Made by a program: the position numbers and the translations under genes. From Rebecca billardiae RCC1528 (taxonomy: Eukaryota; Protista; Haptophyta), in contig OZ251223.1 of assembly GCA_965240325.2 (NCBI GenBank), forward strand, positions 2,852,001 through 2,916,000: DNA of 64,000 nucleotides, read 5' to 3'. The notes beneath the pieces are model-generated. The model ran no database searches, had not been told where the DNA came from, and was given only the letters and a program-made list of their open reading frames with translations. Shown piece by piece: positions 1,384 to 63,675 of this stretch. Each line of letters opens with the position of its first letter. Position 1 is the stretch's first letter.

Positions 1384-3450
1384 GCCAGCCGCTTGCACCA
1401 AGCCGCGGTCTCCGCTGCGCACTGCGGCGAGTGCGCCGAGCAGCACTCGGCGTCAGCGACCGATGACCAATCGAATCATCACCGTCGCAGGCTGCCGCGG
1501 CGGCGCGACACGGCCCGGGCTCGGGGCTGCCCCGGAGAAGCCGACTCCGTCACCGTGACTACGGTACGCCACTCCGCGGCTCCGCCGACCCGGCGCCGCG
1601 CAGCTCTGAGCTCACGAGTGCCACTAGCCTAAGTACGCGTGCGGCTACGCGTGCGCGCGGCCCGGGCTGCCGAGTCTTTCGTCCGTACGGACAGTCCCGC
1701 CGACTGGCGACTCTCACTCTGGGCCTGGCCGAGCGGCGGAGCGGCGCCGCGTATCTCATGACTCATCGATCTTGGCCCGCGGTGCAGGGCGGAGCGCGCA
1801 GCGTGGAGCCCGCACCAGCGGGCCCGAACCACGTTTCAAAAAGATCTTTGATCAAGAAAAAAGGGACGGGGGGCGATTTTTAGGGCTGGCGGAGACCGAG
1901 TTTCGAGTTTTTGAGATCGCATAGAGAGGTCTATTAGGCCGAAAATAAGCGCGCCCAGCTGATTCCCTTAAGTAAAGTGCGATCTGGACGTCAGCTGGAC
2001 GTGACATTAGTGTAACGGTTCGTTACGAGCGCGATTTTAAGTATGAGATTGCCGCCAACCGCCAACCGATAAAAACGGCAAGGCAAGGGCTCGGGAAACT
2101 TGATCACTTCCAAATACTGTGAATAGTAAAATGCTCTCCCCGAGCGCGCCTGTCGCCTCGCAGGCCGCGCGTCTCGCTCCCTCTCCCCGAGGCTGAGCTC
2201 GCGGCCCGCCTGTCACCTCGCAGGCTGCGCGCGCCACGGACACATGCGCGACGAGATCGCGGCGGGGGCGGCGAGATCGCGGCGGGGGCGACGGGCAACA
2301 ACCTGCCCGCGGGCGCGTTCGTCACTCGAGGAGCAGCGCGCAAGGGCGAGCCGAGTCCGGAGCACGCGAGCTCGTCGCTCGCCGACCGGAGCAGAGCGCG
2401 CCGCCCGCCGCCGCCGAGCGAGCGGCGCGGCAGAGCTGATGAGCCGGATGCGCCCGGAGCTCGCGCGGCTGAAGGGCGAGCTCGAGCACGCGAGCTCGCG
2501 CCTCGACGCCGAGCCCGAGCTCCTCCTCAACTCAGTCGACGGCGGCGCGGAGGTCCGGCAGCAGCGTGAGGACTCACAGACAGTGTGAGTGAGCCGCGCG
2601 CAGCTCAGCCTGCCGCTGGCAGCCGCCGTCTTCGTTCGAGGCCGACGCGGCGGAGGAGGCGGCGGGCGACGAGATCGCGGCGGGGGCGGCGAGATCGCGG
2701 CGGGGGCGACGGGCAACAACCTGCCCGCGGGCGCGTTCGTCACTCGAGGAGCAGCGCGCAAGGGCGAGCCGAGTCCGGAGCACGCGAGCTCGTCGCTCGC
2801 CGACCGGAGCAGATGAGCGCGCCGCCCGCCGCCGCCGAGCGAGCGGCGCGGCAGAGCTGATGAGCCGGATGCGCCCGGAGCTCGCGCGGCTGAAGGGCGA
2901 GCTCGAGCACGCGAGCTCGCGCCTCGACGCCGAGCGCGAGCTCCTCCTCAACTCAGTCGACGGCGGCGCGGAGGTCCGGCAGCAGCGTGAGGACTCACAG
3001 ACAGTGTGAGTGAGCCGCGCGCAGCTCAGCCTGCCGCTGGCTGGCAGCCGCCGTCTTCGAGGCCGACGCGGCGGAGGAGGCGGCGGGCGACGAGATCGCG
3101 GCGGGGGCGGCGAGATCGCGGCGGGGGCGACGGGCAACAACCTGCCCGCGGGCGCGTTCGTCACTCGAGGAGCAGCGCGCAAGGGCGAGCCGAGTCCGGA
3201 GCACGCGAGCTCGTCGCTCGCCGACCGGAGCAGAGCGCGCCGCCCGGCGCCGCCGCCGAGCGAGCGGCGCGGCAGAGCTGATGAGCCGGATGCGCCCGGA
3301 GCTCGCGCGGCTGAAGGGCGAGCTCGAGCACGCGAGCTCGCGCCTCGACGCCGAGCGCGAGCTCCTCCTCAACTCGGTCGACGGCGGCGCGGAGGTCCGG
3401 CAGCAGCGTGAGGACTCACAGACAGTGTGAGTGAGCCGCGCGCAGCTCAG

Positions 3451-5933
3451 TACCAGGTGGCCGCACGCCCTGCCTGAACCGGCAGCCGCGCTTTAGGGAA
3501 ACACCATCCGGGGGGCCGCCTTTCACTTAAGGACACGCGGGTGGGTGATTACTGAACACGTGAACCATGTCCTTTTCGGACATACGCACACGCAAGATCT
3601 TGGGTACGCAGTCATACTATCTGAATCCTGAGCGCCCACAAGCCCTCTTGGGTCCATGATAATCTGCCTCGTCAGCGAGCGTCCAAAAGCGAATCCGACG
3701 GAAGGTTTTGATTGAAAGCGAGCGCTTTCTCCACTACGAGACGGATTCCATTCTGGTCCGCTCGTTCTGAACCAAAAGGGCATGGATGCCGTTCCACGGC
3801 GCGCGCGCGGTTGGGGCGGGCGGCGAAGCGGTTTGGTCGGTGGGGTACGGTACAGTCTGTGGCGGGCCGGCGGTGGGTGAGCTACCTATGCAGTTTAGTT
3901 GCGCACGCTCGCTCGACGGCAGACCGGCCATAATCATGCAAGTAGCAATAGCATCAAGCTGTATGTGTCCGCCACTCCGCCAAGTCAAGAAGTGCTAGTC
4001 CCTACTTAGTTACGCCGGCGGCCGGCGGGCACATATCATTCACTAGAGACGGCACCCTCGACGCCACTATTGGCCTTCCGTACCCCGCCCGCCGCAAGCC
4101 CGCCGCACATCCGTATATGATCGTGAGCGTTTCAGACGACAAGTGGACTAGGGCAGCAGCTGGCAAAACGCACCGTCGTCGGCGTCGATGGCTCACACGA
4201 TCGCGTACCCGGTGGTGGTCGGAGTGCCGGTTGGGTTCACCATGCCCAACGGTCTCCCTTCGGGCCAGTCGGCCCGCACGAATGCGCCGCGACCAGCGCC
4301 ATTTGCCTCGCAACCATCGGCAGCATCGTTGCGCAACCGGGGCGGTCGCATTTGCCGGCGCAACATCTACCTGACCATCTCTGCAGTGCCCAACAACCAT
4401 CCTCTCCTTTCCAACCTTCCTGCAGTGGCGACACACTTGCTGGCGCCATTGAGGGGCAAACAGAAGGAGTTCGTCGTCTGCAAGGAGCCGCACGAGCACC
4501 CCAACGACCCTAGCCGCGCTTGGCACTTCCACGCCGTCATCGGATCGGAGATGAAGACGGACTGCCTGGTCACAGCCTTTGACCTCCCCCTCCAGGGCTG
4601 GGGCACGCTGCGAGCGTACCACGAGCCGATGGGCCCGACGAAGCGTGACCTGGCGAAGTGCATCCACTACTGCCAGAAGGAGGGGCCGTCCAACTTCATC
4701 ATCAGCGCCAACTGGGCAACCATCCCAGAGCCGCTCGACGTGTGCGGCGTCGACTGGGCGCGCGCGCTGCACGCAGCACAGTCTGCAGACGAGGCAGCGG
4801 ACATCTTGCAGTGCGAGCACCCGTCGATCTACTACCGCTACGGCCATGCCGTGCTCGCCATGATCCGCCACCGACACGGCAGCGGCGTCACGCCGCGCTT
4901 CGCCATGAGCTCGTTTGCGCGACTGCCGCTCGACCTCTCTGATGGGATGGCTGTCGTGCTCGCAGGTGGATCCGGCCACGGCAAGACGGAGTTCGGGCTG
5001 TCGCACTTCGAGAACCCTCTTCTCGTGTCCGAGATGGACGACCTGAAGGATTTGACGGCTCGCAACGACGGTATCGTCTTCGACGACATGGATTTCACGC
5101 ACATGACGGCCAAGGCCGTGATCAAGATGCTCGACCCCAACTACGAGCGATCGGTGCACACGCGCTACACGAATGCCAAGATCCCCGCAGACATGCCACG
5201 CGTGTTCACGACAAATCTGGCCATGCAGTACCCCTACGAGCACATCTTCCCGCCCGGTCGCAACCTCGAGCAGCAGCGTGCGCTCAACCGCCGCTTCAAA
5301 GTCGTGACGGTCGATGCCGACCTCTTTGCGGCGGCTCCCGCCGCCGGCGCGTCAGCGGCTGCCGTGCAGACGTGAGCCATCAGCAAGCGTGCGTCGGTGC
5401 ATAGCCGCAAGATGCCCTGCTCAGCCCTGCTGAGCTGCTCAGACTGGCTTGACCCTCACGCTAGTGCCAGGCGGCCTGGCGGTGAGGCGCCGCGGCAGCG
5501 GGCCGCCCTTTCGTCAGCCCTCTCTCGAGCGGCTTGCGGCGAGGGCGAGAACAGCGGTGAAACTGAAACATGGGTGTCCTCGGGCCAATCAGGTTAGCGC
5601 AAAACAGACCGCGCAGCCTGAATGCGTTGAGAGGAGCTAGTACATCGACCCTGAATAGCCCTATGGGCGAACTCGTTTTGCGGATGTGGAGGCCCCCAAG
5701 ATTCCGCCGATGATTCGGCACGATTAGGGAAGCATGCAAGCGTCCAACCGGTACAACATAAGAAGCCGCTGAGAAGTATAGGCTCAAAAATGACCATAAG
5801 CCCCAATCGCGGGGCGTACGGTTGCGTGTGTTCGACAACTTGACCCTGAAATCAATTGGAGACCGGGTAGAGCGGTCTAAGGCGCGGCCGGCGTCAGACC
5901 GCCGACTCACGCATATGACTTCTCCACCTGGTA
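3451..5933 (+). mobile_element. 2,483-bp Rep-encoding insertion with 10-bp terminal inverted repeats (TACCAGGTGG...CCACCTGGTA)
   Basis: TIRs at 3451-3460 and 5924-5933. The flanks CAGCTCAG | CCTGCCGCTGG rejoin exactly into the uninterrupted sequence seen in repeat copies 1 and 2. Lower GC than the flanks; single recognisable ORF. Confidence 0.88.
4188..5375 (+). CDS. rep: CRESS-DNA-virus-like replication initiator protein (HUH endonuclease + SF3 helicase)
   Basis: RCR motif I IYLTI, motif II WHFHAVI, GRS-like AFDL...AYHEP, motif III YCQKEG, Walker A GGSGHGKT, Walker B IVFDDM, motif C VFTTN, Arg finger ALNRRF. Intact 395-aa intronless ORF (the start could be a downstream Met). Confidence 0.93.
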   Translation: MAHTIAYPVVVGVPVGFTMPNGLPSGQSARTNAPRPAPFASQPSAASLRNRGGRICRRNIYLTISAVPNNHPLLSNLPAVATHLLAPLRGKQKEFVVCKEPHEHPNDPSRAWHFHAVIGSEMKTDCLVTAFDLPLQGWGTLRAYHEPMGPTKRDLAKCIHYCQKEGPSNFIISANWATIPEPLDVCGVDWARALHAAQSADEAADILQCEHPSIYYRYGHAVLAMIRHRHGSGVTPRFAMSSFARLPLDLSDGMAVVLAGGSGHGKTEFGLSHFENPLLVSEMDDLKDLTARNDGIVFDDMDFTHMTAKAVIKMLDPNYERSVHTRYTNAKIPADMPRVFTTNLAMQYPYEHIFPPGRNLEQQRALNRRFKVVTVDADLFAAAPAAGASAAAVQT

Positions 5934-6933
5934 CCTGCCGCTGGCAGCCGCCGTCTTCGAGGCCGACGCGGCGGAGGAGGCGGCGGGCGAGCACGGCGGC
6001 GCGGTGGAGCAGGCGCGCACGCGCGGCGGCAGGCGCGACGCGCCGCTCGCCTCGTTCCACCGCCCCGAGCTCCGCTCGGTCGGTCTCGGTGCGCGGCTGC
6101 GCAGCCGGCAGGCCGGCGGGCCAGCAGTCTGCAGTGGCGCGCGCTCTCGCTCTGCCGGCACGAGGCGTGCCGGCTGAGCGACCAGCGGCCCGTCGTCGAG
6201 CGCATGGCGCAGGGCGAGTACCTCAAGCAGGTGCGCCCGCTCGCGCGCACGCGCCGGCTCGCGACCAGCGGCCCTTCGTCGAGCGCATGGCGCAGCGCGA
6301 GCACCTTGCAAGCTGAAGCAGAGTGCGCCCGCACGCGCGCACGCGCCGGCCCGGCGCCGCGCGGCGCCTCTCGCCCTCTCGCCCTGCGCGCGCCGCCGCC
6401 CCGCTTCCCCGCGCGGCCCGTCCGCGCCTCTCGCCCTGCGAGCGCGCCGCCCCGCTTCCCCGCGCGGCCCGTCCGCTGGTGTCCCATGCCACCCTTGGCC
6501 GTGCGCGCCCGCATACTCGCGCCGAGTCCGAGACTCGGTCTCGGGTCTGACTCTCCCTCTCAGAGTGGCTGAACTGTCTTTCTGACTCGGACTGACTGAC
6601 TCGTCAGTCTCATTCTCAACCACTGCGCCGCGGGCCCCGAACTGCGTTGGTTCTACGGAAAAGGACCGCGGAACGCGGTCATGGCCCGCGGTGCAGGGCG
6701 GAGCGCGCAGCGTGGAGCCCGCACCAGCGGGCCGGAACCACGTTTCAAAAAGATCTTTGATCAAGAAAAAGGGACGCGGGGGCCGATTTTTAGGGCTGGC
6801 GGAGACCGAGTTTCGAATTTTGAGACCCTCTCTACAGATGCATCACGGAGAAAAAAACCGCGTCCACGACATTCCCCTAATCAATCGTGGACGGCCGGGC
6901 GTGAGAGTTCACTTCTGTGTGAAGTAGGACGGT

Positions 6934-7479
6934 TACAAGTCCAATACAAGCGTCAGCTTCTTTGAGGCTATTTTTGCACGTCCTTACGGGATCAGCGAAG
7001 TAACCAACCGATATATATTGGCTTCGTCGGGGTCGTATTCACTACTGGAGAACATTTGCACCGCGCTTCGTATTCATATGTATGGTTCACGCAGGCATAA
7101 AATCGCTTCGTCGGGGTCGTATCCACTATACTGGAGAACATCATTTGCACCGCTTCGTTTTCATACATTATAATGTATATGGTTCATGGACTGCTAGGCG
7201 GGGTCGTACAAGTCCAATACAAGCGTCAGCTTCTTTGAGGCTATTTTTGCACGTCCTTACGGGATCAGCGAAGTAACCAACCGATATATATTGGCTTCGT
7301 CGGGGTCGTATTCACTACTGGAGAACATTTGCACCGCGCTTCGTATTCATATGTATGGTTCACGCAGGCATAAAATCGCTTCGTCGGGGTCGTATCCACT
7401 ATACTGGAGAACATCATTTGCACCGCTTCGTTTTCATACATTATAATGTATATGGTTCATGGACTGCTAGGCGGGGTCG
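6934..7479. repeat. Two tandem copies of a 273-bp AT-richer unit, each with an internal diverged sub-repeat
   Basis: 6934-7206 matches 7207-7479 (TACAAGTCCAATACAAG...GCTAGGCGGGGTCG). GCTTCGTCGGGGTCGTAT.CACTA occurs twice per unit. Confidence 0.93.
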
Positions 7480-7617
7480 AGCAGAATATCATCGATATTC
7501 ATCAGGCGCACGTGTGCGTATTCATCATCAGCCTTCGGGAATTGGGAGTAGCTATTGGCCTTTTGCCCTCTGGCGAGCCAGGAGCAGGCTCGAGGCCACT
7601 TTTGCGCTCACGTGGAC

Positions 7618-8133
7618 ATGATGCCGAGCACGTCAGCTGGCGACGCCGACGAGGACCGCGCTCGCCGCGTATTGAACGTGCTGCTCGAATCCGGGGCAGT
7701 GAAGAAGGTGGCTAAGAGCACGCTCCAGAGCATCGCTGCTGCCATCTCAGTCGTGAGGCACGAGCAGGACGTGCCCTCTGCGGCCGTGAAGTACAACGTG
7801 CCCAAATGGTCGATCTACAACTTCGTTCGCAAGGTCCGCACCGTGCTGGAGGACGAGGGCGCAATCGCCAGGGGGAGCGCGACGCGACTGATCGCCGACT
7901 TCACCACGCGCCCCGCAGGCCAGCTCCCTCCCTCCTCCTCACCCGGCCCAACAGCTGGCAGCCGCTTTGCGGCACTCACTCTCGGCCCGCGCCGGCGAGT
8001 CTGTCTGCAGCGCTGGACGGGCGGACCTAGGAGGACGAGCTGCGGCGCGGGCGACGGTGGTGCGCGACGTCCCCAGAGCTGGCCGTGCCTCTGCGACGCG
8101 TGCCGAGCCCGACCGAGGTGTGTCACCCCGTGA
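7618..8133 (+). pseudogene. Pipsqueak/CENP-B-type HTH-containing fragment (possible transposase relic)
   Basis: LQSIAAAISVVRHEQDVPSAAVKYNVPKWSIYNFVRK fits the psq-HTH pattern (A+..V......AA..Y.VP.S++). Downstream sequence degenerates; no catalytic domain visible. Confidence 0.55.
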
Positions 8134-9260
8134 CCCCGTGCAGTGCACGCGCGGCGCGCGAAATAACGATCACCGGTGCCCTCGCACCTCGGCACACACA
8201 GTGCTCCCTCTGGCTGTCAGCTCCGCGTAGATAGAGTTGCGCTCATGCGTCGATCACGCCTCGCGCCCGCCTGTCGGCCGTCGCGCAGGCGCTGGTCGAA
8301 CCCTACTCGGACCAGTGCAAATCATCTACTGACTACTCCTGGCGCTGCCGCGGCGCGGTGTGACGACAGACAGCGCGGTCAGCAGCAGCGGCCCGAACGA
8401 ATCCGCGGCCCCGCACAGTGTTCCCTGGCTGTCAGCTCCACGTGGCCTGGCGTGCACGTGGAGTCGCGCTCATTCGTCGATCACGCCTCGTCGCATCCGC
8501 CTGTACACAATCCGGGCGCCGCGCCGGCGGCTGCGATGGGCCCGCGCCCGCGGCGCCGGCGCCGGGGCGCAGCGGCGCGCCGCTGGAGTCTAGTTGTACG
8601 GGCATGCAACTGGCTGGTCTGTCAATAGACGACTGCGACGGAGGGTGCACCGCCACCGCGGGCCCCGAACTACGTTCGTTCTACGGAAAAGGACCGCGGA
8701 ACGCGGTCATATTATTGATGATTGATCGGCGGACTTGATAGTCGTCGCCTCGTCGGGCCCGGATTACGCGCGCGCCATTATGATGCGGTATAGTATAGGC
8801 TACGTACACACTGCGGCTAGGCTGAGCGCGTGTATATAATTTCAATTTGTCACTGTGTATAATCTCGCCTGCCTGAGCTGTGTGCGTCTCTTATTCTTAT
8901 AGCAGTAAACTGTATACAACCAGCCGGCGGCTCGTACTCGTAGCCACCGCCACTGCTGTCAGTCGTAGATTAATCGATATATGACGACTGCTCATTCGCT
9001 ATATGATTTAACGAGTGACACAGTCTGTGACACAGTCTGACAGTGACCGTGACGATGATGATTGATGTGATTGTGATGAATGTCAAACTGGCCGACCTGA
9101 GTCTGACTGACTGACTCAAAGCCTGGCCGGGGACAGCGTCAGGACTCGGCTCACGGCTGCATGGTCCGCTTCGGGCTGACTTCGGCTCAGGGCCAAGACG
9201 TAACGGAGCTTGGGGGATCAACCGGAGCTGGAGCCATCATTGCGAGTCATCATGCCAGCA

Positions 9261-10343
9261 TTATTGACGATGATGCACAGCGCCGACAGCGCGCCCTCGG
9301 GCGCGCTGACGCACGCATTCGGTTGCGGCCCGGCCGCCACGACGGACGATTCCGTCGTCCGGCCAGATGGTGCTCGGATGAGCTTCGCTGGGCTGAGAGC
9401 GGGGTCTACGCCTCACCAGCGTGGCGGCAGAAGGGTCGCGCACGAAGAGAAAGTAGGACGTGCAGTCACGCGTGGGCACCGCGTGCTCTTGGCGGCACGG
9501 CGCTGTGAAAGTCTGCTTGTGCTTGTGTGTGAGCTTATGAGCCCTCTTAAACATCTGCTCCCAAGACGCCGGCTCCGTGAGCGCATCCTTCCAACCAAAG
9601 CGCGCGAACTCCTGCGCCCACCACCAGCGTGGCAGCTTGGACAAGTGCACGTCGACCAGGCTGCCTTTGCTCGTGCGGTACACGCTCGGTCCCTCGGCAA
9701 TGTTAATCCAGAGCACATGCTTGACAACCCGCGTGATCTCCTCGATCGCCCGGTGGATGTCGGGCGGCGAGATGTGCTCAAGGACGTCCGAGCTTACCGC
9801 GGCGTCGAAGTAGTCGTCGGGCCACGGGATGTCGAGTATGGAGCCAGCCTTCAGGCATGGCTGCTCTCGACATGTGTGAGATCTCCCGAGGGCGTGCGCG
9901 GTGCGGATCGACGCAGGAGAGACGTCCATGCCGTGCATGTCCGCGCCTTTAACGATGCGCGGGATCTGCTCAACGGCGAAGCCGACGCCACAACCAAGCG
10001 AGACGACGCGCGGTGTCGCAAGACCAAGCCCGCGGAAGCAGCTGACTGTCTCGTTGATGAGTGGCAAGAAGCGCAGCTCGTTCGCCGTGAAGTTGCTGGA
10101 GTGGTAGCTGCGAGTGTCCAAGTCGGCGTACAGGGAGGCGTAGTCGAAGGTACTCCTATATGGCGCGGCCTCGCCGTGACCTATGGCGAGCGACCACCTG
10201 ACGAGGAATGGCAGCAGCCTCCTCGACGAGCGCCTTCCCGGCGGCGCGCGCATGCAGGCAGTTGGGGAGAGGGCGCCCGCTGCGCGGCGCAGCCCGCGCG
10301 CGCCGACTCCACTGCCAAGGGTGGTCGTCGTCAGGACACTCAT
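9261..10343 (-). CDS. Class I SAM-dependent methyltransferase
   Basis: Motif I VVSLGCGVGF, post-I HGMDVS, motif II IPWPDDYFDAAVSSDVLEHI, then AIEEITRV; possible N-terminal targeting region. Confidence 0.85.
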   Translation of the reverse strand: MSVLTTTTLGSGVGARGLRRAAGALSPTACMRAPPGRRSSRRLLPFLVRWSLAIGHGEAAPYRSTFDYASLYADLDTRSYHSSNFTANELRFLPLINETVSCFRGLGLATPRVVSLGCGVGFAVEQIPRIVKGADMHGMDVSPASIRTAHALGRSHTCREQPCLKAGSILDIPWPDDYFDAAVSSDVLEHISPPDIHRAIEEITRVVKHVLWINIAEGPSVYRTSKGSLVDVHLSKLPRWWWAQEFARFGWKDALTEPASWEQMFKRAHKLTHKHKQTFTAPCRQEHAVPTRDCTSYFLFVRDPSAATLVRRRPRSQPSEAHPSTIWPDDGIVRRGGRAATECVRQRARGRAVGAVHHRQ

Positions 10344-12327: not shown

Positions 12328-12729
12328 CTTTACCGCGTCACAAAATACGAAAATTGACGCGACTTATTGTTTGCGGTGTCCGGGCGGGCTCGCGCGCGCC
12401 GGCCGACTATTGCTCGACGCCAGAACAGCTCGGATCATGCTTGATTCTTGAGCCACCCGGCATGAGTATCTGCACTATGTGTACCGACGCACCCTCATAC
12501 GGATCAGATGACGAATTCCGCTTGGGTGCCGCCTGACCTCCATAAATGATATCGCCGTCCCTGGGACAAGCGATCGGTGTCGTTCCGGGCGGAGACGTGC
12601 CCTTTTGTAGTCATCATCGTCAGTCTTTCCGGCAACCCGCGCATCTTTTCAATAGGCGGCCGGTCCGTCGATCTCAGGGCCGATCTCCGCGCGCTCGAGC
12701 ACGTATTCGTCGCGCATCCCACGGCCAAT

Positions 12730-14565
12730 ATGGAGCGCCAGACGCCGTCGACGCTTGTGCACAACTCGAAGCTCGACATCTATGACCACTCGAGCGTGGC
12801 GCGCAAGACGTCCATCATCTGCACGATTGGCCCCAAGACCAAGTCCGTGGAGATGATCACCAAGCTGCGCCAGGCTGGTCTGAACGTCGTGCGCATGAAC
12901 TTCTCGCACGGCTCGTACGAGTATCACGGGGAGGTGATTGACAACACCCGCGAGTCGGTGAAAAAGAACGCCCTGAACGGGCGGCCCGTCGCCATTGCAC
13001 TCGACACGAAGGGACCGGAGATCCGCACGGGCATGCTCAAGGGCGAGGGCGGCGTCGACACGGTGACGCTCGAGAAGGACTCCAAGGTGACCGTCACGAC
13101 CGACGACAAGTTCAAGGAGGTGCGCGCGCGAGCGACGCGCGGCGGGGGGTGGGGTGGGGGGGGAGGGCGAGGCCCCGTCGCGAGCCTTCGGCCGAATCGT
13201 CTGGGCGCGTGCGATCGGGACTCCCAGGGTCGACCGTGTTGCTTGCGCGCGCGCGCGCGGCCGGGCTGATGGCGCGCGCAGGCGTGCTCCAAGGAGGTCA
13301 TCTGGGTGGACTACAAGAACATCACCAAGGTGGTGCACGTGGGTAAGCAGATCTACGTCGACGACGGCCTCATCTCGCTCGAGGTCGAGTCGAAGACGGA
13401 GACCGAGCTCAAGTGCCGCGTGGTGAACTCGGGCGCGCTCGGCTCGAAGAAGGGCTGCAACCTGCCCGAGGTCGACGTCGACCTGCCCGCGCTCTCGGAG
13501 AAGGACAAGGCGGACCTGGCGTTCGGCGTGGAGAAGGGCGTCGACATGATCTTCGCCTCGTTCATCCGCAAGGCCGCCGACGTGCGCGCCGTGCGCCAGG
13601 TGCTCGGCGAGGCGGGCAAGCACATCAAGATCATCTCGAAGATCGAGAACCACGAGGGCATGCGCAACTTTGACGAGATCCTCAAGGAGACGGACGGCGT
13701 GATGGTCGCGCGCGGCGACCTGGGCATCGAGATCCCGGCGTACAAGGTGTTCATCGCGCAGAAGATGATGATCGCCAAGTGCAACCTCGCGGGCAAGTCG
13801 ATCATCTGCGCGACGCAGATGCTCGAGTCGATGACCTTCAACCCGCGCCCGACGCGCGCCGAGGTGAGCGACGTGGCCAACGCCGTGCTCGACGGCGCGG
13901 ACTGCGTGATGCTCTCGGGCGAGACCGCGAAGGGCAACTACCCGATCCAGGCCGTCGAGATGATGGCCGCCGTGTGCCGCGAGGCCGAGCACGCCTTCTC
14001 GCCCTCCGCGTACCTCGCCGACATCCTCAAGACCTTGCCCGAGATCGTCGACACCAACGAGACCACCGCCATCTCCGCGGTGACTGCGGCGAACAACCAC
14101 GGCTGCAAGCTGATCATCACGCTGTCGGGCACGGGCGAGTCGGGCCGGCTCATCTCCAAGTACCGCCCGGCGTGCGACGTGATGGTCGTGACGCGCGCAC
14201 TGTGGGTCGCGCAGCAGGCGCACCTTTACCGCGGCTGCCTGCCGTACCAGTACACGGCCGAGCGCATCCAGCCGTGGGAGGCGGACGTGAACGCCCGCTT
14301 CAAGTGGGCCATCATCGAGGCGAAGAAGGTGCGCGCGCGGCCCGCGCTGCGCCACGCCCCGGCGAGCGTGCCGCGCCGCTGCGCCTGCTCACCACACGCC
14401 GCCCGCCCCGCCGACGCCCGCCGCGCCGCGCAGGCACGCATGATCAAGCCGGGCGACTCGGTGGTGGCGGTGCACGGCTGGAAGGCTGGCGGCCACTTCA
14501 CCAACACGATGCGCGTGATGGAGGTGCCCGAGGACTCGTCGCCCAACACGCCGCTCCTCGGCTAG
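12730..14565 (+). CDS. PK: Pyruvate kinase; exons 12730-13119, 13282-14328, 14434-14565
   Basis: [97 protein letters not shown] introns at 13120-13281 and 14329-14433. Confidence 0.97.
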
Positions 14566-15789: not shown

Positions 15790-18045
15790 TCACGCCACCT
15801 CTCGTGCGCGCTTGCGCGTGTTCTGCGCGGGCGGCGACACCGTGCTCGTGGCCGCCAGCAGGTCGCTGCGGCCAGACGTGGCGATCTCGCGCGTGATCTG
15901 CACGAGCAGGTGGGGCGAGGCCTCCAGCTCGTCCCACATGGTCGAGCCGACAACCGCTTGGTAGTTGTGCATGATGAACGAGAGGCACTGCGACTTGAGC
16001 TCGGAGCCGGGGCAGTCGAAGCGGTCGGCCGCCTGGATGATGCGGCAGACCGTCTCCACCGTGATCGAGCGGCGCAGCGCAAAGCCGCACGTGAGCTTGA
16101 GCCCAGGCAGCATGTACTGGTCGGCGAGCGCGAGCAGCTCGATCGCCATGTCTGGATCGACGTCGATCGCGCCGCCGTACAGGTGCTCGAGCATCTTGCG
16201 GAAGACGGCCGGGCGCACCTCGCGCACGCGCACCTCGCGCTTGGCGACGCCCGCGCTGCCGTCGCTGCCGCCGCCGTCGCTGTCGCTCGAGCGCGCGCGG
16301 CCCGAGCGCTGCTGCCCCTCGGCCATCGGCGAGGTGAGCATGGCGCGCAGCGTCTCGCAGCGCGCGTTGAGGATGTTGGAGTGCGCGTGGATGCGCTCCT
16401 CGCCCACGACGAACGTCACGTCCGCCGACGCCTCGTCGTCGAGCAGGGACGAGATCTGCGAGAGCGCCTCGGTGTTGAGCACGAGCCGCTGCGCCACCTC
16501 GCGGCCGGGCGTGGGCGTGAACGGCCCCCAGCGCACGAACGCGCCGCTCGCGCCCTCGTGGTCGCCGCCGCCCGAGGTGCGCGGTCCGCGCGAGTCGCGG
16601 TCGGACTCGACCACCGCCTGCAGCCACAGCTCCTCCTCGCGCATGATCGGCCCGCACCACGCGCTCAGCCGGCCGTCGTGCATGCTCAGCCGGTTGGGCG
16701 GCAGCTCCTCCTCCGAGATGAAGCGGAACGAGTCAAACCACGTCGTGCACCGGTCGCGGTTGCCGAGCGCGCACGCGCCGATGTAGCTCGAGGACGTGCG
16801 GCGGAACGGGATCGCGCACTCCTCCAGCTTGCAGTTCACGTAGAAGTCCACCTGCGCACGAGCGCGCGCGGCGCGGCGCGGCAGGCGCGCGCGCGCGTGC
16901 GCGCGAGAGGCTGGTGAGTGCTGGCGCGGCGCAGCGCGGCGCGTGCGGCCGGCCCGTCCGGCCGCACGCGCGCGCGCGCGAGGCAGGAGAGGGCATCGGC
17001 GCTCCATCGGCGTCACAGGCTATCGATCAGCGAGTAATCAGGTGGTTGATCCTTGTGAGTGAACTCGTCCCCTGGAGCCGCGCACGGCCTCCCTCTGCCT
17101 CCCGCCCGGTGCGGTTGCGCCGCACCGCGTGTGCGCCGGCGCCGCGCGCGCGCGCAGGGGCCGGTGGGCGCGCGCACCTCCTTGCGCTCCCAGTGGAAGG
17201 TGAGGTCGATGCGGTACCACGTGAACGGCTCGTACGGCACCGCGCCGTACGAGGCGCCGCCGGAGCCGAGGAGGCCCATGTTGCCGTCCTTTGTGAACTG
17301 GAACTGCGCCACGCGCCGGTTCACCTCGTTCGACTCGCCGAGAATGAAGTGGCCCGCGTCTGCCGCGCCGCGGCGCGCGCCGGCGGGTCGAGGCACGCGC
17401 GGCGGGCGTGGGCGGGCAGCGCGCGTCAGTCGGCGTTGGGCGCGAGCGCGCGCGCGCGCGCGCCGCGCGGGCGCGCGGCGCGGAGGCGCACCCGAATCAG
17501 GCGAGTCCGTGCGCACGTAGAACGTCACGCGCGCGGGCTGGAAGCGCTCGAGCTCGTTGGTCGGCCCCAGCTCCGTGTCGTCTTCAAACGCAGACGAGTT
17601 CTCGCGCATCACCGTCATCACCATGCCGAAGTTTGAGTCGTTCCCGCCCTTGAGGAACATCGAGGGGTTGCCCGTCGCGCTCACGTCCACGTCGAAGCCG
17701 TACTCGTAGTGCGTCTCGCACGTCACTTTCCTGCGCACGCGCGAGCGCCGCGTGGCGCGGCGGCCCAACCGCCTGTCAGCGCGGCCCGCACTGCGCGGGG
17801 CGCGGCGCGGGCGGCACGGCGCACCATTTGCCCAGCTGGCAGTCGGCGAAGTTCTCGTCGAGCGCGACGACGGAACGGATCGCGCGCACGCTAATGCCCA
17901 CGTTCAGGGGCGTGGGCTCGTCGTCCTCGGCGTCCGCGTCCGCTGTGTGAGCCGTGAGCTCGATTGGGTACGGGAGGTTGGCGCAGATCGCCGCGGGCAT
18001 CGCGCCCCACTTTAGGCGCACGGAGGTATTGTGGTACAGCGACAT
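15790..18045 (-). CDS. BTB/POZ-domain protein with C-terminal BACK-like region; exons 18045-17825, 17730-17492, 17359-17178, 16851-15790
   Basis: ADVTFVVGEERIHAHSNILNARCETLRAML...VRPAVFRKMLEHLYGG...LLALADQYMLPGLKLTC. Three GT-AG introns join the frames consistently from MSLYHNTS. Confidence 0.87.
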
Positions 18046-52596: not shown

Positions 52597-52746
<150 letters not shown>

Positions 52747-54597: not shown

Positions 54598-55176
54598 TAA
54601 CGACGTGGTTATGGTACTGTATGCAACGGGCAGGCGTCAAAGTCAGAAAGCTGTAGCAGCATCAGATCGAGCAGCAGAGACAAACACCAGGATCAGCGCT
54701 CCTCGCCGTCGTCCCCCCCCCCCCCCCCTCGTAGTCGCCCATCACTCCATCGCCGAGCGGAAGCTCGACGCACCGTGGCGTCTGGCGTCGACGCGCGCGC
54801 GCCACCGCGGTGGTCGCGGTGCCACGCGTCGTCAGCCGTCGTCTCGAAGTAGTCGTCGTATGCAGCGCCCCCGCGGGCGCGTGCCCCCGGGCGCACGTGC
54901 GCCATGCGCGCGCGGGCCATGAGCATCTTGGCCTGGCCACGCAGGCAGCGCATGCCCAGCTCGCGCCGCATGGTGCCGAGCAGCGCGCGCTCGGCGGCGG
55001 GGCGCGAGGGCGCGCTGGGCGGCTGAGGCGCGCGCGCCACGTGTCCCGCCCCATCTTGGCAATCTTCTTGAGGGTGAGGTCCACCTCCGCGCTCCACTCG
55101 CCGAACGCCCCCACGACAACCGGGACGATCGCGGGGAAGGTGTCGAGCCGCGCCTCGTATGGGCCCACCGCCCGCC
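54598..55176 (-). mobile_element. 5'-truncated non-LTR retrotransposon fragment (C-terminus of restriction-like endonuclease, CRE/R2-type) with 3' UTR
   Basis: Minus-strand IVPVVVGAFGEWSAEVDLTLKKIA, then after a frameshift MRRELGMRCLRGQAKML, matches the RLE C-terminal pattern (P+vve.fG.w...a...l..ia ... r..ls....rgna.m). A second copy of the 3' end is at 15016-15352. The 5' end abuts a TA tract. Confidence 0.68.
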
Positions 55177-55187
55177 ATATATATGAA

Positions 55188-55191
<4 letters not shown>

Positions 55192-55231
<40 letters not shown>
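55192..55231. repeat. (TA)n microsatellite
   Basis: Direct observation. Confidence 0.95.
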
Positions 55232-55235
<4 letters not shown>

Positions 55236-60187: not shown

Positions 60188-61072
60188 ATGGCGGCCGAGG
60201 ACGCAGCCGCTGGCGTTGAAGCGCTACTCGACGAGGCGCTGGACGCGTTCGATGCAGAGGGCGAGGGTGCGGACACGAGTCTCGCGGCGGAAGAACGCCT
60301 CGCCGCGGCAGCGGCGCTCGCGCCTGCGGTGGCGCCTGACGCCGCGATCGGGCCCGCAGCCAACGCGGCCAATGCCGACGACGGCATAGACAGCGAGCTC
60401 GTCGCCAGCATGGAGAGCCTCATGCGCGGGATCGGCCAGGTGGACGACGCGGAGCTGATCAAACGGCTAGAATCGTCCCTCGCGCAGCTCGAGCAGGAGG
60501 CCGTCGCTGCCGCTGCGGCGACGCCGGCCGCTGAGCTCGAGGCGGCGCCTGAGAGCTCCGTCGAGCGCACGCTGCGCCTGCTCTCGCGCAGCGCGGACCG
60601 GCTCTCGGCGGACGACGGGGGGGAGGACGGTGGCGGCGCGGGCGCCGACGGCGAGTTCGGCGAGATCCTGCAGCAGCTCGCCGCCGGCCTCGACGAGCTC
60701 GGCGACTCGGACGAGTTCGCGTCCGCCATCGAGGGCATGATGGCGCAGCTCGTCTCCAAGGACGTGATGCACGAGCCTCTCGTGCAGCTCAGGCGGCTGT
60801 TCGCGCCGTGGATGGAGGCGCACGCGGCGGAGCTGTCAGCGAGCGAGCGCGCGCGGTACGAGGCGCAGCAGGAGGTCCTCGAGCGCATCCTCGCGCTGTA
60901 CGACGCCGGTGGCACCGAGCACGAGCGCATCATCGAGCTGATGCACGAGATGCAGCAGCACGGGCAGCCGCCGCGCGAGGTGATGCGGCAGCTTGCACCC
61001 GGCTCGGAAGTGGAGGCGCTCCTGCGCAGCGAGGGCGATGCAGGTGCCAAGGAGCTCTGCGCGACCATGTGA
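60188..61072 (+). CDS. PEX19: Peroxisomal biogenesis factor 19
   Basis: N-terminal LLDEALDAF (Pex3-binding), MMAQLVSKDVMHEPL, RYEAQQ, LMHEMQQHGQPPREV, C-terminal CaaX (CATM). Confidence 0.93.
   Translation: MAAEDAAAGVEALLDEALDAFDAEGEGADTSLAAEERLAAAAALAPAVAPDAAIGPAANAANADDGIDSELVASMESLMRGIGQVDDAELIKRLESSLAQLEQEAVAAAAATPAAELEAAPESSVERTLRLLSRSADRLSADDGGEDGGGAGADGEFGEILQQLAAGLDELGDSDEFASAIEGMMAQLVSKDVMHEPLVQLRRLFAPWMEAHAAELSASERARYEAQQEVLERILALYDAGGTEHERIIELMHEMQQHGQPPREVMRQLAPGSEVEALLRSEGDAGAKELCATM

Positions 61073-62293: not shown

Positions 62294-62363
<70 letters not shown>
62294..62363. repeat. (TA)n microsatellite
   Basis: Direct observation. Confidence 0.97.

Positions 62364-63578: not shown

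Positions 63579-63581
<3 letters not shown>
62969..63581. mobile_element. MITE / non-autonomous TIR element (613 bp, 22-bp TIRs, TA on both flanks)
   Basis: TGGAGCGCTCGTTGGAACTTGA (62969-62990) is the perfect reverse complement of TCAAGTTCCAACGAGCGCTCCA (63560-63581). TA lies at 62967-62968 and 63582-63583, and there is an extra subterminal TCAAGTTCCA at 63543-63552. Confidence 0.85.

Positions 63582-63673
<92 letters not shown>
63582..63673. repeat. (TA)n microsatellite abutting the MITE right end
   Basis: Direct observation. Confidence 0.97.

Positions 63674-63675
<2 letters not shown>

Follow-up and report, generated by a model that had tools for sequence, protein, structure and literature searches.

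How does an intact replication gene of viral type come to sit between sharp inverted ends in a protist chromosome, and which enzyme moves it? The question is raised by a 2,483-bp inserted unit in a 64,000-nt stretch of the haptophyte Rebecca billardiae RCC1528 (assembly GCA_965240325.2, contig OZ251223.1, positions 2,852,001 to 2,916,000 of the forward strand). We call this whole stretch the window, and positions given without a contig name refer to it. The unit encodes a single recognisable protein, a replication protein (Rep) of the type found in CRESS-DNA viruses and, judged by sequence comparison, it belongs to a multi-copy family of mobile units that have inverted ends and rep as their sole gene. 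We tentatively favour, at a probability of roughly 0.45, the reading that the unit owes its spread to Rep-dependent mobility, with precise cutting and joining at its tips.

A Rep-only unit in a tandem repeat

The unit breaks the third copy of a host tandem repeat, whose two sister copies provide empty versions of the same site. The features that define the insertion are the following (^ marks the insertion point):

3451..5933, + strand: the inserted unit as a whole (2,483 bp), its junctions flush with the sister repeat copies
3451..3460, + strand: left terminal inverted repeat, TACCAGGTGG
5924..5933, - strand: right terminal inverted repeat, CCACCTGGTA, the reverse complement of the left tip
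2248..3450: host tandem repeat, 421-bp period, 2.9 copies, 97% identity, broken by the insertion in its third copy
5934..5990: resumed third repeat copy, matching its sisters at 93-100% identity
2597..2620: sister empty site 1, CAGCTCAG^CCTGCC
3018..3041: sister empty site 2, CAGCTCAG^CCTGCC

Because both sister copies run uninterrupted across the site, the boundaries of the unit cannot be moved by even one base. The target is G^C and the insertion is flush, with 0 bases duplicated and 0 bases lost. The two tips form a perfect 10-bp inverted repeat (11 bp including the flanking G and C), beyond which the inverted repeat ends; the chance of a perfect 10-bp inverted repeat falling exactly at both ends of an insertion is about 1e-6. 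Allowing one mismatch at most, the inverted-repeat pattern of the tips occurs five times in the window against 0.83 expected. The GC content (GC) of the unit, 0.59-0.64, is set off from that of its flanks, 0.72-0.76. Since the 1.2-kb target repeat (2248-3450) holds no TA dinucleotide, both TAs lying inside the insert, an integration that depends on TA would have had no target there. A first-pass annotation of this DNA had described a unit with inverted tips, placed in the third repeat copy with nothing duplicated or lost, and had held against a mariner-type reading that the sister repeats lack a TA; these points were borne out for the window copy. A search for a further copy or fragment of the element found none within the 64-kb window.

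The coding part of the unit comprises the rep gene and its two domains:

4188..5375, + strand: rep gene, intact, 395 aa, stop codon included, GC at third codon positions (GC3) 0.82
4347..4721, + strand: HUH (Y1) nuclease domain, with motif I near 4359-4385, HUH at 4524-4532 and the tyrosine motif at 4668-4679
4905..5315, + strand: SF3 helicase domain, with Walker A at 4965-4988, Walker B at 5073-5087, motif C at 5205-5216 and the arginine finger at 5289-5294

The rep open reading frame (ORF) has no stops and no frameshifts, and its GC3 falls among the values of the host genes (0.78-0.97). The window Rep had no match in Pfam, PHROGs or a single-sequence PDB search, and an exact-protein look-up returned no record for it or for the neighbouring methyltransferase. 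The nuclease domain is too divergent for the Pfam models; recognition needed a profile of the family and a predicted fold. The family profile matched the geminivirus Rep nuclease domain 7vg8_A (E 3.8e-9), 1l2m and the redondovirus Rep 9pqq. The AlphaFold model of the window Rep (predicted local distance difference test score, pLDDT, 76.5) matched the full-length redondovirus Rep 9pqq_A (E 6.8e-9), Rep68 of adeno-associated virus 2 (AAV2), porcine circovirus 2 Rep and papillomavirus E1 helicases, and its nuclease fold matched the nuclease domain of tomato yellow leaf curl virus, 7vg8_A, with a template modelling score of 0.71. In an alignment of 20 members E100, H102, H113, H115, Y161, G260, K266, D299, R326 and N343 were invariant and T63, K164, T267, D300 and R369 nearly so; H113 and H115 make up the HUH motif, Y161 is the single tyrosine, G260 and K266 belong to Walker A and D299 to Walker B. 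The catalytic residues are unchanged across a divergence that reaches down to ~30% identity. Homologues, invariant motifs and fold agree that the window Rep is a Y1 HUH nuclease fused to an SF3 helicase, as had been read at first pass from the motifs of this sole recognisable ORF.

No capsid gene was found in the unit by ORF analysis, by tblastx against the relatives, by Pfam or PHROGs, or by the fold of the longest open frame. Each of the non-rep arms carries 6-10 stops in five of its six frames; neither blastn nor tblastx aligned the arms significantly with relatives, and Pfam and PHROGs gave no match to them. Their longest open frame (156 codons) extends beyond the element, has its first ATG near the 3′ end and folded with a pLDDT of 38. 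Because the smallest related unit measures 1,647 bp and holds a rep of 1,170-1,190 nt, there is no space for a capsid or a second gene. A DDE transposase was found neither in any unit nor among those window ORFs that reach 170 aa and lie outside the block of 85% GC; Pfam scans of ORFs in the flanks of the relatives detected none, these particular scans being uninformative. The earlier description of a discrete, capsid-less unit with Rep alone and no DDE gene agrees with these searches.

Related units in aquatic metagenomes

A homology search of 1.84 billion representatives gave 1,537 matches to the window Rep, 26 of them at E<=1e-30, with identities of 52% and below. About 25 proteins align over both Rep domains and the remaining matches cover the helicase only; some of the distant homologues carry Pfam Viral_Rep or Gemini_AL1. 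Every relative within the Rep family comes from a marine or other aquatic metagenome, on a GC-rich contig no longer than 3.3 kb. Neighbour-joining placed the 20 sampled members in a monophyletic group apart from four Pfam-recognised Reps (bootstrap 100/100, with a small outgroup sample). The bounds of the units were found by comparing contigs that carry an identical Rep, and retrieval by exact Rep biases the sample toward intact genes. Eight lineages were delimited in this way or from a single contig (P, Rep; L, contig):

P0002 (L002/L003): 1,730 bp in L002; copies 99.1% identical over 1,716 bp; 32-nt inverted repeat starting TATCGC; unrelated flanks
P0003 (L004-L007): 1,647 bp; 99.6%; ends TATCCTC... 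and ...GAGGAT; 3 right flanks
P0171 (L050-L059): 1,828 bp; copies ~100% identical, with one pair at 99.9%; ends a perfect 13-bp inverted repeat, TTAAGGTGGTTTC; 7 left flanks, 5 right
P0013 (L041-L049): 2,119 bp; 99.2-100%; tips TTAACCCT...; 4 right flanks
P0026 (L060-L067): ~1,842 bp; 99.1-99.9%; 14-bp perfect tip TATCTCTTAACCGG within an inverted repeat of ~50 nt; 5 left and 3 right flanks
P0019 (L068-L072): ~2,040 bp; 99.9%; tips TTAACCCC...; 2 right flanks
P0015 (L073-L076): ~1,690 bp; 98.8-99.3%; ends TAAAG... and ...CTTTA; 2 left and 3 right flanks
P0001 (L001): ~1,870 bp; single contig; 28-nt inverted repeat with CAAA on both sides; one flank set

Of seven sampled lineages whose Rep lies in a unit of 1.65-2.1 kb with inverted ends, six have near-identical copies (99-100%) in different flanks; the family is therefore mobile and not a dead viral fragment, and the first-pass view of a mobile element gains from the same comparison. 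The window unit is best explained as a copy of a family of mobile elements that are small (1.65-2.5 kb) and reside in GC-rich marine protists. Ends of the TA type and of the TTAA type are interspersed within the one Rep clade. A Rep-only family with inverted ends appears to be undescribed: a full-text literature search returned no description of Rep-SF3 elements with inverted ends, which is absence of evidence within the literature searched. Pattern scans of IMG/VR for two of the family's tips gave no match.

Distant IMG/VR relatives, alike at the level of the helicase, differ from these units. Among 25 of them 21 have terminal overlaps of 99-298 nt and are thus circular, with GC of 0.40-0.49, whereas the close kin L001-L007 have no terminal overlap and GC of 0.55-0.61. 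These IMG/VR contigs (L008-L032) were used for length, circularity and GC, and for one similarity search with the non-rep arms, in which nothing significant turned up. We also considered that the unit might be a circular virus genome opened within its capsid gene; the non-circular kin, the exact ends in different flanks and the lack of any split ORF reaching the ends led us to reject this.

Outside rep, three structured segments were noted in the window unit:

3672..3770, + strand: imperfect palindrome upstream of rep, apex 3714-3729, GAAAGCG/CGCTTTC, fold z -1.3
3470..3485, + strand: small subterminal hairpin near the left tip, CTGCC/GGCAG, weak and not above chance alone
5872..5902, + strand: subterminal hairpin near the right tip, 12-nt arms, 83%, weak

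The arms folded as wholes did not go beyond shuffled sequences (z -1.1 and -0.5). Subterminal hairpins are clear in the P0026 lineage only, where each end of the unit has an 11-bp hairpin. A long imperfect palindrome lies directly upstream of rep in four lineages (L002 638-700, z -5.1; L004 214-280, z -3.1; L043 632-739; L073 570-647); the arms at its apex are A-rich and T-rich in all four, and the loops are not conserved. The upstream palindrome sits where a CRESS origin would lie. The segment at 3672-3770, a weak counterpart of the palindrome in the relatives, is a candidate replication origin or regulatory site. As to an origin stem-loop in the window unit, a de novo search for hairpins yielded no more than this weak segment.

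Several contigs show particular arrangements. On the 3.3-kb contig L077 (18-1382, - strand) the family Rep P0032 adjoins a U-box protein gene and no inverted ends were detectable around rep; this may be an older or truncated copy. In L043 (2064-2305; also in L041, 1745-1986) a third, forward copy of the tip, exact over 11 nt, lies 241 nt inside the right end and bounds a 242-bp segment that itself has inverted tips. L075 (1-1772) has a 31-nt terminal overlap, and in it the right end of the unit is followed by 53 nt and then by the left end, so that L075 represents two units in tandem or else a circle that includes a spacer. In L068 (221-817) the left-end region including the tip is duplicated directly, 269 nt at 100% with a spacing of 328 nt. 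Family members are often found in host tandem repeats, with periods of 421 bp in the window (2248-3450), ~647 bp in L050 (1878-2575) and 66 nt in L060 (2084-2226), and short repeats adjoin the units in L063, L073 and L074. This embedding could stem from a preference for such targets or from biased assembly.

Proposed cutting and joining at the ends

The insertion signatures disagree across lineages. In L050, of the P0171 lineage, a filled site (50-1877) and an empty copy of the same site (2472-2575) lie one host-repeat unit apart. The empty site reads flankA-TTAA-flankB and the filled one flankA-TTAA...TTAA-flankB; TTAA has been either duplicated or re-formed on both sides. The first-pass statement that no target-site duplication is made therefore stands for the window copy and not as a rule of the family. 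Possible short duplications are seen in L001 (CAAA) and L063 (CAG) and none in L002 and L073, and the inverted repeat of L001 has neither TA nor TTAA. The window unit and the P0171 lineage have AGGTGG next to the tip in common, which counts in favour of Rep and against a simple DDE reading. When junctions are oriented by rep, CA opens the right flank in 7 of 12 independent junctions and TG closes the left flank in none of 13 (Fisher 0.0016, for the TA-type lineages and L001; the statistic is post hoc, and metagenome contigs that run through repeats can be chimeric). As the asymmetry follows the orientation of rep, it is what would be expected of a strand-specific enzyme and not of a symmetric DDE transposase.

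In the mechanism that we favour, Rep would cut single strands exactly at the tips (5′-TA... or 5′-TTAA... on each strand) and rejoin them to a nicked target, in analogy to the action of HUH enzymes at replication origins. The complementarity of the tips suggests that the two could form the arms of one hairpin, with an AT-rich apex holding the cut site. Where the target contains the apex motif, cutting and rejoining would recreate the motif at both junctions, so that the empty site would have a single TTAA and the filled site two; a target without the motif would show no duplication, which is the state of the window copy. Unwinding of the unit would fall to the helicase, and the palindrome before rep would have a part in replication or control. 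We chose this reading for the window copy because its junctions are incompatible with TA-targeted integration. Rep-driven movement would explain why the insertion is flush and in TA-free DNA, how the TTAA pattern arose, why an intact rep is the only gene, and both the mixed end types and the flank asymmetry. It is also in its favour that the HUH transposon groups known as of 2023 (IS200/IS605, IS91/ISCR, Helitrons and Replitrons) make no staggered-cut duplication (Craig 2023, PMC10288648).

A number of observations weigh against Rep as the enzyme that acts at the ends. The sole verified empty site in a relative, that of L050, resembles an ordinary TTAA duplication, and Tc1/mariner and piggyBac classically target TA and TTAA. 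When the elements' own tip sequences were compared with the oligos printed in published papers, the window tip including its TA shared 9 of 10 bases with the Mos1 5′ inverted terminal repeat (ITR) oligo (PMC2642840), and the P0013 tip equalled the piggyBac end over 10 bases (PMC2533014). Pure chance is an unlikely source of such matches, each being paired with the fitting TA or TTAA. The piggyBac-like tips are present in P0013 and in P0019, whose tip reads TTAA and then CCCC, and absent from P0171, whose tip (GGTGG) is unlike the piggyBac end in PMC2533014, though a TTAA site was verified in that lineage. The ends diverge strongly even among close Reps (window, L002, L001), and the recurrence of an internal palindrome beside such variable ends suggests that the constant DNA partner of Rep may be internal and not terminal. 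Rep-driven movement leaves both this and the Mos1- and piggyBac-like tips unexplained. In addition, the flank asymmetry has the limits given above, only one copy is visible in the window, and terminal inverted repeats are absent from all four HUH transposon groups (PMC10288648). Cutting of these ends by Rep is something that we infer from sequence. The first-pass proposal that Rep itself is the transposase is not upheld as it was worded; a palindrome that recurs beside varying ends would suit action of Rep at an internal origin better than action at the ends.

The strongest competing explanation, which we regard as possible and, on balance, unlikely, is a hybrid element: a CRESS-type replicon (rep and its palindrome origin) lying between the ends of resident DDE families, with transposases supplied in trans and Rep doing the copying only. 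Ends would then be mariner-like where there is TA and piggyBac-like where there is TTAA, and the window copy would be an aberrant capture, independent of a transposase. The Mos1-like window tip, the P0013 and P0019 tips, the two TTAA against one in the L050 pair, and the variable ends beside a recurrent palindrome all speak for such a hybrid, and so does the inward third tip copy 241 nt inside the right end of P0013, which recalls transposon families with short derivatives. There is a precedent in an element of Tuber melanosporum, with 37-bp inverted ends and both Rep-like and transposase ORFs (PMC3198968). The hybrid accounts for the tips, the TTAA site and the palindrome. It does not account for the window copy, which sits in 1.2 kb without any TA, has both TAs inside the insert and has an inverted repeat of just 10 bp; nor for the missing transposases, none having been found in any unit or nearby; nor for the DDE superfamily, which one monophyletic Rep clade must have changed at least twice. 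The GGTGG tip of the lineage with the verified TTAA site, the L001 inverted repeat with neither TA nor TTAA and the rep-oriented flank asymmetry, unexpected for symmetric DDE insertion, also argue against it. The alternative raised at first pass, a terminal-inverted-repeat element that had captured a viral rep, has thus gained from the tips and lost its TA target in the window copy.

Three further readings are improbable even when combined. A capsid-less extrachromosomal Rep replicon, either linear and with inverted ends or circular, might have been captured once at a chromosome break through host repair and persist as an endogenous relic. The single copy in the window, the blunt, duplication-free junctions compatible with end joining, the confinement of every relative to contigs of at most 3.3 kb and the circular or tandem appearance of L075 with its 31-nt overlap would fit, and integrated capsid-less Rep plasmids exist in bacteria (PMC6668415). 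We nevertheless consider such a dead end quite improbable: the junctions coincide with the two tips to the base and neither side has lost any sequence, identical exact ends recur in up to seven flanks at 99-100% identity, which points to specific end-processing and not random capture, the close kin L001-L007 lack the overlap of the circular IMG/VR contigs, and the host-like Rep GC3 of 0.82 suggests long residence. It is less probable still that rep is a passenger, a viral gene captured by an unrelated inverted-end transposon and without a role in its spread. DNA transposons commonly capture genes, and the Tuber melanosporum case may be of this kind; here, every sampled lineage has an intact rep and no other ORF, the catalytic residues of Rep are invariant down to ~30% identity, and copies within a lineage are near-identical (with the caveat that exact-Rep retrieval favours intact genes). 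An assembly artefact, in which a foreign or episomal read was joined into the repeat, is the least credible of the three. Tandem repeats are prone to assembly errors and the window has one copy; a chimera, however, would not place both breakpoints at inverted tips and restore the register of the repeat to the base.

Known elements and the chromosomal setting

The window unit lacks defining features of each known family with which we compared it. None of the four HUH transposon groups joins a Y1 Rep, an SF3 helicase and inverted ends (PMC10288648). Replitrons come close in being eukaryotic (algae and protists) and small, with a Y1 Rep akin to CRESS Reps and variable insertion signatures that sometimes include short duplications; their Rep has no helicase, is mostly HUQ and has a second small domain, and their termini are short direct repeats (PMC10288648), as against the SF3 helicase and inverted termini found here. 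Helitrons are likewise eukaryotic, fuse Rep to a helicase and insert precisely without duplication. They have a Y2 Rep with an SF1B (Pif1-like) helicase, no inverted ends and insertion between A and T (PMC10288648), whereas the window unit has Y1 (the single Y161) with SF3, 10-bp inverted tips and a G^C target. IS200/IS605 elements have a small Y1 transposase without helicase, and subterminal hairpins without inverted ends, unlike the window unit with its helicase and inverted ends.

CRESS-DNA viruses (Cressdnaviricota) resemble the unit in a single protein that joins a Y1 HUH nuclease to an SF3 helicase and has HUH, not HUQ, in motif II; the window Rep is geminivirus-like by profile and redondovirus-, circovirus- and AAV-like by fold. 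In contrast to these viruses, the units have no capsid gene, are bounded by inverted ends and are integrated at many sites, the close kin are non-circular, the window copy is linear and integrated, and GC is 55-64% against 40-49% in the circular IMG/VR relatives. Endogenous viral elements would be expected to show a degraded gene, undefined ends and a single event; the present unit has an intact ORF, exact ends and multi-copy kin. AAV Rep68/78 resembles the window Rep in combining HUH and SF3 and in its fold, and the AAV genome likewise has one sequence at both ends; the matched AAV structure is bound to the integration site AAVS1. Parvovirus ends are long self-folding palindromes and parvovirus genomes encode capsids, whereas the tips of this family measure 10-50 nt and no capsid gene was found.

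Tc1/mariner (Mos1) and piggyBac elements resemble the family in ends that begin with TA or TTAA and in the one TTAA of the L050 empty site. The family differs from them in having no DDE gene, in the 10-bp inverted repeat of the window unit and in the switching of end type within one Rep clade. Tc1/mariner inserts at TA and duplicates it, and neither the window site nor the repeat at 2248-3450 contains TA; the TTAA target duplicated by piggyBac is seen in L050, where cutting and rejoining within TTAA would give the same result. Two elements from the literature also come near. The 'geminivirus-like transposon' of Tuber melanosporum (Liu et al., 2011, PMC3198968) likewise has a Rep-like ORF, many copies, inverted ends and no obvious target duplication; it is far larger and has transposase ORFs and an interrupted Rep ORF, whereas the window unit has Rep alone and intact. 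Integrated bacterial pCRESS plasmids (Kazlauskas et al., 2019, PMC6668415) are also capsid-less and chromosomal, with a nuclease-helicase Rep of CRESS type. They differ from the window unit, with its eukaryotic host and inverted ends, in being bacterial and site-specific, with direct-repeat attachment sites and extra genes. If the comparison is carried further, the family would constitute a third independent group of eukaryotic HUH transposons, the first to use a complete CRESS-type nuclease and SF3 helicase as transposase and the first HUH transposons with terminal inverted repeats, a virus-type replicon turned self-mobilising and, with copies 99-100% identical, still active in marine protists. 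We give this proposal somewhat less than even odds.

The genes recognised around the unit are the following:

334-1383: WW and RanBP zinc-finger protein gene
9261-10343, - strand: class I methyltransferase gene
12577-14562: pyruvate kinase, as two ORFs ~40 nt apart (likely an intron)
15793-17016, - strand: BTB/BACK protein gene
60188-61072: Pex19 gene, closest database Pex19 at 55% identity; an identical Pex19 lies on a 4.1-kb contig of run ERR14847148

Because Pex19, WW/RanBP and BTB/BACK proteins and a split pyruvate kinase are encoded, we take the window to be part of a eukaryotic nuclear chromosome of very high GC. Rfam and tRNA scans of the window gave no matches. A single ORF of 9,187 codons (18382-45945, + strand) fills a block of 80-86% GC; its codon-position contrast (GC3 0.97 against GC2 0.69) suggests that it is really coding, its composition is 27% Ala and 13% Gly, and its first 2,000 residues had no Pfam match. 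It may encode a giant low-complexity protein. Pure (TA)n tracts of 60-145 nt occur at 52600-52744, ~55170-55235, 62294-62363 and 63581-63675, in contrast to the TA-free repeat at the insertion site. The low-GC islands of the window were considered as transposase genes, and this was ruled out, the islands being long (TA)n tracts. A 55-nt direct repeat (6628-6682 and 8656-8710; 96%) encloses ~2 kb of lower-GC DNA, which includes a perfect tandem duplication of 273 bp x 2 (6934-7479) and an ORF (7555-8133) for which no family match was found; this segment, 6628-8710, may be another insertion.

Rep-encoding viruses, plasmids and transposons are thought to have repeatedly given rise to each other, and intermediates are rare. 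In the present family the viral replication protein is retained in full, a capsid has been lost or was never there, and sharply defined inverted ends have been acquired together with an existence in many chromosomal copies. Should Rep be what moves the unit, the family would be a new superfamily among the few HUH transposons and would show a path from rolling-circle replicon to transposon; if DDE enzymes move it, a replicon would be borrowing transposon ends of more than one superfamily, which is equally unusual. The family is also a warning against taking every Rep gene in a protist genome or metagenome for a virus or a dead insertion. Whichever enzyme is responsible, the virus-to-transposon question gains a concrete system, defined by sequence, that is open to genome surveys.

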